Part shown: in pieces, positions 27,601 to 31,415 of the stretch | How positions within the stretch are numbered: the stretch's first letter is position 1 | How the letters are laid out: the number at the start of each line of letters is the position of its first letter | NCBI GenBank assembly: GCA_964057225.1 | Contig: OZ059898.1 | Coordinates: 9,114,001 to 9,178,000 of the forward strand | DNA: 64,000 bases | Direction of reading: 5' to 3' | Source of the DNA: Auanema rhodensis | Lineage: Eukaryota > Animalia > Nematoda | Notes under the pieces: generated by a model | Told to the model about the DNA's origin: nothing | The model's database searches: none | The model's input: the letters and a program-made list of their open reading frames with translations, nothing else | Position numbers and translations under genes: made by a program

Positions 27601-30600
27601 CAATAATATTATATAATTTCAAAATTATAGTTGAATGATTTCATTTCTGGTTCATTAGTAATTAATTGGGATGTTAATAGACACGCTACAGAAGCTGTTG
27701 TAATTTCTGCCAATGACCAGGCCGCTGAAATTGGTTAGGCTTCTTAATGCAAAATTTGATTTTGAAAAATTGTTTTTCAGCACCAAAAAAATACCTTTAC
27801 CAAAGCGGCGAAGAGCTATCTGAAGCAGTATCCTCTTTGCATTCTTCTAATTACGGTGGAAATACAAGAATAACAACGTATTCTAATAACAAAATTTTAA
27901 TTTTAATTAGAAATAATATAATTTATTTATAGTTTGTTATCGTTATTGGGAAATACAGAACATGAACGTAGGCAATCTCAACCATTAACAGCAATTATCT
28001 TTACTCATTACACGTATGTTTTTTAATTAATTTTAATATTTAAAATTAATTTATTCAGAAATCCTGATGATATAACTTCTGCTTTGGAAACTATTAAAGA
28101 TAAGGATATCAACATCATTGCAGTTGGAATTGGAAATGAAGCATCTGCATCAGAACTTCAGCGCTTAACTGGAAATGTTATAACTGTGCCAACGCTATCC
28201 GTGGCAGTCAAGCCTATGGTTTGAAAACTGATTTCATTACCTTTAACATGATAATTCTTCTAGATTGAAAGTCTTGTTTGTACCAAATCTCCAGCATTAA
28301 CAACAACAGCACAAACAACTACAATCCTAACAACTACAATCCAAACAACAACACAAACAGTAGCAACAACAACTGAAAGTAAATATGCAACATGTATCTC
28401 TGTATTTTATTGAAACATTTAGAACCAACAACTACAACTCAAGCTACCACCTCAACTATTCCTCCAACAACACCAAGTATATTCCCATTCAAAACTTGAT
28501 TCATAATTTCTTTGCAGTTCCACAGTGTCTGGATTGTTATCCCGATATATCCAATATTCAGATTCTTTTAGACACTTCAATTTCCCAAAACAAGCAAATA
28601 GTATGAATTAATATTACTTTCAAGCTATAAAACAATTGTTTTAGTTTGACCAACAGAAACAAGCTGCTATGAGCTTAGTATCCAATTGGAATTACATGAA
28701 TCGTATTGCATTAGCAGCTTATGCTCAACAGTTCGATCCCTTGATTCCATATGATACCTTGAGGAACGATGAAGTTGATACATTAAAACAGTTGATTCTT
28801 ACCCTAACACAAAGCAATACTAAAGCAAATTTAACAAAGTAACTCGACTAATTTTTATTTTTTTATATAATTTTTATTATTTAGTTGTCTTTCTAAGGCT
28901 AATAATATAGATAATTCGAATAAGTATGGAAAACAACACACTATTCTCTTTACTATGTCAAGGTAATTGTCTTAAAAAAATATAAAATTATTTTTTCTTT
29001 ATAGTGATCCTGACGATATAACTAAAGCTCTACAGGCTGCTCAATCATTGAGACAAAAAGGAAGTGTAACTGTCGTCGGAGTTAATATTCCTAATGTTTC
29101 TGACTTGACCAAGCTATCTTTGCCCAATGATGCAATAGCTTGGACAAAACTAGATGATATTGACGATGTAGTTAGGAGAATCATGATTACTTTACGTAAG
29201 TTAAAATGAATTGTTTCAAAACATTTGAAACTCTTCAGCACATACTCACAATCCTGTAACTCACACTGAGAGTATTCCTTCTACACCTACAACTATGCAA
29301 ATGACTACAACCGTAATTACTACAGGTTACGGTTCAAAATTTATTTTAAGACATCAATTTTCTTCTTTTAGTTAAGCCAATTGATTATTCTCCAGATAAA
29401 TCAAATATTCTATTAGTATTAGATGCATCAGCTGAGCAAGATGACGACACGGTATATTCAAAACATCTTTATTTAATTTAAAAAATTTTTTTAAGTTTGA
29501 CAATCAAAAGAAAGCAGCAATCGAGCTTATTTCAAGTTGGACTCATTTTGAACGATTTTCATTTGGAACATTCTCCAACACATTTATCCAAACGATTTTG
29601 TATAACGAATATCATACATTGGAGGATGTTAAAGCTGATATTGAGATATGTACGATATCTGAATCTAATAGCAATATCACTAAGTAAAGAAATAATTAAA
29701 ATATATATTATAGCCAAAATAATTGTTTTTTAGAGCTTTAACAGATATAAATCAGATGGTAACACCAATTGAAGAATATGGAAAACAACATACTATTCTA
29801 TTTGTATCTACAATGTATTATTTTAGTTTTAATTCAAATTTATTTATTTGTTATTATAGAAAACAAGCTGACTTCCTACAAAAAACTTATGATATGGGAA
29901 ATGAGCTAAATAACAAGGGAAGTTTGATTACGATTGGAGTCCAAGCTGAAGACGTAACAGCTTTACAAGGATTAAGTTCTATTCCTCCTATAATGTGGGC
30001 TGATTCTACTAAAAGTGATACTTTAATAAATGATATTATGGCTGATCTTTGTAAGTTTAAATTATTATATTTTTATTATTTTTACTATTATTTAGCTAGT
30101 ACACCTGTTTCTACCTCCAGCATAGCTCCAACACAATGTAAGTTTTTCATTTTATAATTCTATTTTTACTGTTTTTCCTGATATTTAGCTACTACTCCTG
30201 TTCCAACCTCCAGTTTAGCTCCAACAGAATGTAAGTTTTTCATTTTATAATTCTATTTTTACTGTTTTTCCTGATATTTAGCTACTACTCCTGTTCCAAC
30301 CTCCAGTTTAGCTCCAACAGAATGTAAGTTTTTCATTTTATAATTCTATTTTTACTGTTTTTCCTGATATTTAGCTACTACTCCTGTTCCAACCTCCAGT
30401 TTAGCTCCAACAGAATGTAAGTTTTTCATTTTATAATTCTATTTTTACTGTTTTTCCTGATATTTAGCTACTACTCCTGTTCCAACCTCCAGTTTAGCTC
30501 CAACAGAATGTAAGTTTTTCATTTTATAATTCTATTTTTACTGTTTTTCCTGATATTTAGCTACTACTCCTGTTCCAACCTCCAGTTTAGCTCCAACAGA

Positions 30601-31415
30601 ATGTAAGTTTTTCATTTTATAATTCTATTTTTACTGTTTTTCTTAATATTTAGCTAGTACTCCTGTTCCTACCTCCACTGTAGCTCCAAAACAGTGTAAG
30701 TTTTTCCTTTCATGTGACCTTAGGTTATATATTCTATATGTTTTTCAGTTATTCCTGAAAAATCCAATGTTTTATTGATAATGGATTGCTCTTCCAACAA
30801 TCAAAATCAAAATAAAGTATAGCTAATAATATATTTTAAAGTTTATAATGAATATTTCAGAATGATAAAGTGATTGAAACTATGAAAAATCTTGTTAAAA
30901 CATGGAATCATATGGAAAGAATTTCTTTGGCATGCTTTTCTAACGATTTAACTCTTGTAAAGCAATATTTGGATATAACTGATATTTCATCTCTCAATCA
31001 AGCAATTGATCAATTACACGGAACCCAAATAAATGCTGATATCAAAAAGTTATTAAAAGAAAATTTATAAAGTATAATCATTTCAATTTCAGAATGTTCG
31101 AAACAGCTTCAAAAATTTCATTTGACAAGGAAAAGTATGGAAAACAACACACAATTATATTCACATTTTCTAGGTAAAATATAAATTTAAAAAATATAAT
31201 AAATGTGTTTAACATAATATGTTTTAAGTGGAACAGATGATGCTCAACAATTTGCTGGAGAACTAATGGCAGAAGGATCAACAACAATTATAGGAGTTGA
31301 TATGACTGATATTACATCATTAATACCTTTAGCTACAAAGAATAGCTGTTTTTCATGGGATTCATCATCATCTTCTTCTGACCTTATTAATAATATTATG
31401 AATGTATTAAAGTAA
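24636..31415 (+). CDS. Type II membrane protein with a SEA-like segment and six vWA domains separated by Thr/Ser/Pro-rich linkers
   Basis: KKKK then TM FLLITAIVFILGVGLIIAGSIMLGIGV. vWA first strands: DIFILIDDSN, DIIILLDDSN, DVGLLIDSSS, NIQILLDTSIS, NILLVLDASA, NVLLIMDCSS, each with later IITVGV/IAVGIG-type strands. Many ~45-nt introns. Stop at 31413-31415. Confidence 0.88.
26270..26509 (+). repeat. Coding 12-bp minisatellite, ~20 x T-[E/D/A/V/N]-A-S
   Basis: acaNNNgcatct units inside ORF 26228-26545. Confidence 0.95.
30096..30695 (+). repeat. 93-bp tandem array of 42-nt exon + 51-nt intron (7 exons)
   Basis: Exons start at 30096, 30189, 30282, 30375, 30468, 30561 and 30654. The five middle exons are identical (STTPVPTSSLAPTE). 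Introns gtaagt...atttag are identical except the last. Confidence 0.97.

Follow-up and report, generated by a model that had tools for sequence, protein, structure and literature searches.

How a gene comes to carry seven copies of one tiny exon, each with its own intron, and whether such copies are coding sequence at all, are the questions raised by a 93-bp tandem array in the nematode Auanema rhodensis. The array lies in a stretch of 64,000 nucleotides (nt) from assembly GCA_964057225.1 (contig OZ059898.1, positions 9,114,001 to 9,178,000 of the forward strand), hereafter the window, whose own numbering is used throughout. An earlier reading, made from the letters alone (the sequence-only reading), had placed it as a spacer separating vWA-like modules 5 and 6 of a multi-module gene, and the curated gene model agrees with that placement. 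Our analysis indicates that the array is a real coding structure, in which seven spliced mini-exons would encode a 98-residue Ser/Thr/Pro-rich spacer, which was founded by a duplication that left a chimeric intron, and which was later homogenised. We assign this reading a probability of roughly three in four.

Tandem Repeats Finder identified the array as the sole long-period array of the window (95% matches, 0 indels, score 1133). The 93-bp unit is made up of a 42-nt exon followed by a 51-nt GTAAGT...TTTAG intron, that is, a whole exon and a whole intron with usable splice sites. The parts of the array are the following:

30064-30710, plus strand: 93-bp tandem array, 7.0 copies, with both ends within the flanking introns (Tandem Repeats Finder)
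30096-30137, 30189-30230, 30282-30323, 30375-30416, 30468-30509, 30561-30602 and 30654-30695, plus strand: the seven 42-nt cassette exons, from the unit alignment
30096-30137, plus strand: cassette exon 1 (SSTPVSTSSIAPTQ), diverged, 35 of 42 positions identical to the central exons
30189-30602, plus strand: cassette exons 2-6 (each STTPVPTSSLAPTE), five identical 42-nt exons with 51-nt introns between them
30654-30695, plus strand: cassette exon 7 (SSTPVPTSTVAPKQ), diverged, 35 of 42 positions identical to the central exons
30051-30095, plus strand: intron 0, 45 nt, preceding exon 1, a diverged homologue of the cassette intron
30696-30748, plus strand: intron 7, 53 nt, a different intron that has only its first ~15 nt in common with the cassette intron
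30135-30642, plus strand: perfectly periodic core, 508 bp or 5.46 units, comprising introns 1-5, exons 2-6 and most of intron 6

Every one of the seven exons is entered and left in phase 1, with TTTAG before it and GTAAGTTT after it, and each encodes a 14-residue peptide; in the central version, 10 of the 14 residues are Ser, Thr or Pro. The repeat count, the unit alignment and the frames thus all bear out the earlier description of seven symmetric phase-1 exons of 42 nt in a 93-bp array. The same reading had held the cassettes to be identical, exon and intron alike. This is true of exons 2-6 and introns 1-5, and it does not extend to exons 1 and 7, which differ from the central exons at 7 of 42 positions and from each other also at 7 of 42 (0 indels), to intron 6, which has 2 substitutions, or to intron 7. 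With regard to donor usage, GTAAGT is uncommon outside the array: of the 23 plus-strand hexamers in window positions 1-64000, 9 fall in 28001-32000; of these, 8 are donor sites within the array region (30051-30696) and the remaining one lies at 29196. The usual donors of the host gene are GTAA[ATC] or GTAT.

To define the coding content of the unit, every periodic GT..AG partition of the 93 bp that leaves an open frame was enumerated. Of these, only the 42/51 split has a consensus GTAAGT donor. Its open frame, which reads STTPVPTSSLAPTE, is the same as that delivered by the upstream exon (phase 1) and required by the downstream exon in the curated model. Other periodic partitions, with exons of 24, 12, 21 or 45 nt, exist; they use poor donors or a pseudo-acceptor. 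A gene on the opposite strand was ruled out, as the longest open stretch there is 33 codons. Reading the array through as one exon was likewise ruled out by an in-frame TAA (the first at 30155-30157) followed by a TGA in introns 1-6. The earlier claim of an in-frame TAA in each intron consequently stands for introns 1-6 and fails for intron 0 and for as much of intron 7 as was read. Intron 0 has a length that is a multiple of three and no in-frame stop; its retention would keep the frame, unlike that of introns 1-6.

Base composition follows the same division, with 45-48% G+C in the cassette exons vs 16-20% in introns 1-6, and the 51-nt cassette intron falls inside the 41-55-nt range of the other introns of the host gene. 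Introns of 41-55 nt that end in TTTCAG or TTTTAG agree with a nematode source. The edges of the array are also informative. There, the exons are 83% identical and all 42 nt long, whereas the introns measure 45, 51 and 53 nt and are far more diverged; indeed, three old exon lineages (exon 1, the central exons and exon 7) have retained exactly 42 nt together with 83% identity. Because the edge exons are better preserved than the edge introns, the array behaves as coding exons set between freer introns. In addition, other linkers of the host gene occupy the equivalent place among the modules and are likewise small, Ser/Thr/Pro-rich exons of phase 1-1. The 98-residue spacer that the seven exons would encode is probably O-glycosylated and extended.

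This edge pattern bears directly on the possibility that the whole array is an intronic minisatellite, contained in one 698-nt intron (30051-30748) and left outside the mature mRNA, with its coding look a relic of a former linker exon. The junction from 30050 to 30749 does join in frame (...NDIMADL-FIPEKSNVLLIMD...), and the cassette acceptors are modest by a small matrix. Nevertheless, an intron of that length would stand apart from all other curated introns of the gene, which measure 41-55 nt, and module 5 and module 6 would be joined directly, whereas in all other pairs a Ser/Thr/Pro-rich linker separates the modules. A relic would also have kept its exon length and frame in three old lineages even as the length and sequence of the flanking introns changed, and would have kept perfect GTAAGT donors, which are rare elsewhere in the window. 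We consider this explanation improbable.

Several points weigh against the array as a series of spliced coding exons. The case for splicing of the 42-nt exons, and hence for their inclusion in transcripts, which the intronic explanation denies, comes from genomic sequence only. Skipping of all seven exons is also in frame, so the logic of frames is by itself no proof of inclusion. A small acceptor matrix, derived from 20 other introns of the host gene, gives the cassette acceptor a low score (2.2 bits, vs 3.9-10 when the training introns themselves are scored). A library of 1.84 billion proteins holds neither a predicted protein of the host gene nor one of an orthologue, which makes cross-species conservation unusable. 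Finally, the perfect identity of the core could partly reflect assembly polishing.

The last point can be taken further, namely that the array exists and its count of seven and perfect central identity came about through collapse or expansion during assembly or through polishing of the consensus. Short reads would not suffice to count the identical 93-bp units, five and a half in number. The high contiguity of the assembly (180.9 Mb in 112 contigs), however, points to long reads that would easily span 650 bp, and the edges of the array are clean and diverged, with 0 indels. Nor does the assembly contain a second haplotype copy with a different count; a search of it with the cassette gave no second occurrence, making the locus single copy. 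An artefact of this kind therefore seems to us a minor risk.

The spliced coding array also preserves a record of its own origin. When the cassette intron was compared with all other introns of the host gene, its two ends were found to match different neighbours. Its first 15 nt are identical to those of intron 7 at 14 of 15 positions (mean 7.2 and maximum 10 for the other introns), and its last 36 nt agree with those of intron 0 at 28 of 36 (other introns, mean 15.1 and maximum 21; intron 7, only 18). Aligned in full, intron 0 and the cassette intron are identical in 37 of 51 columns, a value matched by 0 of 2000 shuffles, whereas the full-length similarity of intron 7 to the cassette intron is not significant, the two being unrelated beyond the first 15 nt. 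The cassette intron is thus a junction chimera of both flanking introns. The array limits, 30064 and 30710, sit inside introns 0 and 7, and 36 + 42 + 15 = 93. Given the chimeric intron and this arithmetic, the array fits a single founding duplication of 93 bp with breakpoints in the neighbouring introns.

We postulate that, in the founding event, one linker exon was duplicated together with ~36 nt of the preceding intron and ~15 nt of the following one, and that the duplication junction joined a donor half to an acceptor half to give a functional chimeric intron that had not existed before. The middle copies would later have been expanded and homogenised by unequal crossing-over, replication slippage or gene conversion, while the edge copies diverged. 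In tandem arrays subject to unequal crossing-over or conversion, the edge units usually escape homogenisation, and from the pattern of diverged edges and an identical centre we infer that one of these two processes acted here. The sequence-only reading had regarded the expansion as very recent or actively homogenised. For the middle of the array, with its perfect tract of 508 bp, this is correct: the centre is young or homogenised. The edges are old, with 17% exon divergence.

The array had also been put forward as intron gain by tandem duplication, and the growth of intron number by that route is upheld by the derivation of the cassette intron from introns 0 and 7. Models of intron gain by tandem genomic duplication (Rogers model; Hellsten 2011; Gao and Lynch 2009), as reviewed in PMC3443670, start from an exonic segment containing AGGT; in the classical form outlined in that review, its duplication supplies splice sites from coding sequence and leaves the protein unchanged. 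What we observe is similar to the Rogers model in that a within-gene tandem duplication creates an additional functional intron at its junction, as the chimeric intron and the sum 36 + 42 + 15 = 93 indicate. It differs in that the donor and acceptor halves come from two pre-existing introns and in that 14 residues are added per duplication. Since the splice sites were inherited from older introns and each round lengthens the protein by 14 residues, this is not the classical exonic-AGGT route, in which both splice sites derive from duplicated exonic AGGT with the protein unchanged.

As all exons are 42 nt long and of phase 1-1, gain or loss of a unit keeps the frame and changes the spacer in steps of 14 residues. 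Any number of cassettes, zero included, is compatible with the frame of the curated gene model, in which even the join that skips them all is in frame. Genetic change of spacer length in 14-residue steps is therefore possible in principle, as far as the reading frames indicate. The wording of the earlier account went beyond this, with a variable number of units, exon skipping and alternative choice of 3' splice site; on present sequence evidence these are conjecture.

The proposal of alternative acceptor choice was based on a second TTTAG|CT within the middle exons. This motif is indeed present at exon positions 26-30 of exons 2-6, and only of these (30214-30218, then every 93 nt); its use would give a 12-nt exon in frame, as had been stated. 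The corresponding site reads CATAG|CT in exon 1 and TGTAG|CT in exon 7. As a special mimic of the true acceptor, it does not survive scoring: the internal site reaches 0.9 bits vs 2.2 for the true cassette acceptor on the 20-intron matrix, and 64 of 142 exonic AGs score as well or better, so that by its score it is an unremarkable pseudo-acceptor.

These observations set the odds for regulated length tuning, in which cassette skipping or use of the internal TTTAG|CT would add a mix of isoforms to what the genetic array provides. Donors and acceptors are all close to identical, no combination of them breaks the frame, and the SmPoMuc exon arrays of Schistosoma do give transcripts with variable repeat numbers and aberrant splicing (PMC2576457). 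Against this, the internal site is as ordinary as its score implies and is not found in exons 1 and 7, and a 12-nt exon would be unusually small. Structure prediction for the cassette intron and for the unit yielded no RNA structure (z-scores 0.03 to 1.15), and hence none that connects the sites, and there is no sign of regulation as opposed to noise. We regard such tuning as unlikely.

Exon-plus-intron arrays of this kind are already known, and the one described here is not an unprecedented way to lengthen a protein. The closest parallel is SmPoMuc of Schistosoma mansoni, a multigene family whose mucin repeat is a 27-bp exon in a ~1-kb unit that occurs in up to ~20 copies, with intronic parts >94% identical; polymorphism and transcript variants have been demonstrated, and concerted evolution by unequal crossing-over or gene conversion has been invoked (PMC2576457). 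Like SmPoMuc, the array builds a mucin-type repeat from a tiny exon (42 nt here, 27 bp there) repeated with similar introns, its concerted evolution is explained in the same way, and its repeat number would set the length of an O-glycosylated region, glycosylation being predicted in our case. The features in common comprise a whole exon-plus-intron unit, a symmetric exon, homogenised introns and a Ser/Thr/Pro-rich peptide. The two systems differ in scale, since the ~1-kb SmPoMuc unit contains microsatellites and ours is a 93-bp unit of minisatellite size with a complete 51-nt intron. They also differ in setting: we describe a single-copy gene with seven units, known from one assembly alone, rather than a family, and an internal spacer between globular modules rather than an N-terminal variable region.

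Two further systems can be compared, to the extent that they are described in the sources cited. Near-identical repeated exons with introns are mentioned for the spherule outer wall glycoprotein of Coccidioides, SOWgp (as cited in PMC2576457), which from that mention is a fungal cell-wall adhesin and thus a different protein context from the host of our array. Several nearly identical introns within one gene are reported for Nephila Flag and Argiope MaSp2 (Hayashi and Lewis 2000, cited in PMC3563967). These spider genes, as cited there, resemble our array in their iterated exon-intron units with near-identical introns, and differ in that the units are kilobase-scale and the exons are long silk ensemble repeats rather than a mucin-like spacer. 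What is distinct in the present case is the 93-bp scale with an entire intron, the nematode host, the internal-spacer role and the legible founding junction.

The same genome contains a second exon-plus-intron array:

Contig 3, about 8819826-8822860, minus strand: array adjoining two tandem RAI1/DXO-family matches; its 91-bp unit combines an exon of 51 nt with an intron of 40 nt, the fetched stretch contains at least 24 copies, and the frame is open over the 12 units tested

Both arrays have a common build and scale, with a mini-exon and a 40-51-nt intron repeated head to tail and in frame. The gene and the peptide are unrelated, and the array next to the DXO/RAI1 matches is much longer. Taken together with this second array, the vWA-gene array suggests that, where introns are very short, whole exon-intron units become subject to instability of the minisatellite type. 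One might go further and see in both arrays of this nematode, whose introns are only 40-55 nt long, spliced minisatellites (i.e., units of 90-100 bp with a mini-exon and a whole intron), through which disordered segments in unrelated genes grow recurrently and are still growing, each array having been founded by one sub-100-bp duplication that fused halves of neighbouring introns. We put this joint generalisation forward tentatively and, on balance, incline somewhat against it. If it is true, copy number would differ from one individual to another and would thereby confer heritable changes of spacer length in 14-residue steps, and the identical splice sites would turn such loci into natural tests of nearest-neighbour splice-site pairing. 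Spaced at 93 nt, the eight donors and the seven acceptors of the vWA-gene array are near-identical, which makes this array itself a natural substrate for work on the pairing of neighbouring sites by the spliceosome. It is also a very compact and clean example of repeat-protein growth by copying an exon together with its intron, and its edges preserve the founding event, in that the internal intron begins like one of its neighbouring introns and ends like the other.

The host gene was modelled with an exon-chaining script as an open path from an ATG at 24636; its 5' half is rough only, and its 3' half was curated by hand (23 exons, 28059-31415, with a single terminal stop). The features that place the array within it are these:

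24636-31415, plus strand: host gene (approximate model), six vWA-like modules with Ser/Thr/Pro-rich linkers, likeliest stop at 31413-31415
24636-24700 and 24752-24858, plus strand: first two exons, whose translation gives a 22-residue tail and then a hydrophobic segment of ~27 residues, a putative signal anchor
26268-26510, plus strand: linker 1, a 12-nt repeat of 20 copies with 83% match in a single exon, encoding (S-T-x-A)n (Tandem Repeats Finder; open reading frame 26228-26545)
28264-28378 and 28423-28476 (54 nt, phase 1-1), plus strand: linker 3, two Thr-rich exons (curated model)
29239-29325, plus strand: linker 4, one 87-nt phase 1-1 Ser/Thr/Pro-rich exon, in the position of the cassette exons one module upstream
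29372-29451, 29496-29683, 29734-29814 and 29860-30050, plus strand: module 5, phases 1>0, 0>2, 2>2 and 2>1 (curated model)
30749-30816, 30861-31048, 31093-31173 and 31229-31415 including the stop, plus strand: module 6, with the phase plan of modules 4 and 5

Because a 22-residue N-terminal tail is followed by a hydrophobic segment of ~27 residues, the product is predicted to be a type II membrane protein. This topology would make the C-terminal module 6 membrane-distal, and the array would then set the distance of the last module from the rest. If copy number varies between worms, the locus would make it possible to study genetically at what distance from the rest a surface protein holds its outermost domain.

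All six modules open with a D-x-S motif, and Ser/Thr/Pro-rich linkers lie between them. Modules 4-6 (28518-31415) have a common four-exon plan of ~80 nt (1>0), ~190 nt (0>2), ~80 nt (2>2) and ~190 nt (2>1), and the phase 1-1 linker exons around them are of 54 nt, 87 nt and 7 x 42 nt. As modules 4-6 follow one phase plan with phase 1-1 linkers between them, the whole gene looks to have grown by module duplication. The gene makes repetitive spacers both ways, unspliced in linker 1 and spliced in the 93-bp array.

The assignment of these modules to the vWA family is moderately supported by sequence comparison. Evidence was collected exon by exon, each exon representing about one third of a domain. 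The best single-exon score against Pfam VWA was 18.4 bits (E = 0.0026, profile positions 117-152, exon 28060-28218), which is below the PF00092 gathering cut-off of 23.8 bits. Profiles of the exon types were colinear with a profile built from the 11 VWA modules of P0001: type A aligned to VWA positions 1-14 (P = 1.3e-4), type B weakly to positions 41-73 (P = 0.21) and type D to positions 123-159 (P = 6e-4), while type C had no match to that profile. A phmmer search of the 1.84 billion representatives with exon 29861-30049, the last exon of module 5, returned one match, an unrelated multi-VWA protein, with 42% identity over 33 residues and an E-value of 6e-11 that is inflated by six identical repeats. 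Sequence searches of solved structures with two exon-type profiles gave no vWA match, and a module exon searched against the genome for close paralogues found only itself.

In the vWA domain, the metal ion-dependent adhesion site (MIDAS) is formed by DxSxS with a later Thr and Asp. Here, a complete D-x-S-x-S is found only in module 4 (LLDTSIS), the other modules retaining D-x-S; where TDG would normally stand, the sequence is TMSS, VST or TFSS. By these motifs, metal dependence of the modules is improbable.

The 3' end of the gene is ambiguous, as the bases of the TAA at 31413-31415 also form a GTAAAT donor from which a 314-nt splice would lead to an open block of 148 nt (31726-31873). Reading this TAA as the stop is favoured by comparison with how modules 4 and 5 end. 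Further downstream, the minus strand carries an open frame at 33560-33775 with C2H2 zinc-finger-like spacing (CxxC...H), which probably belongs to a neighbouring gene.

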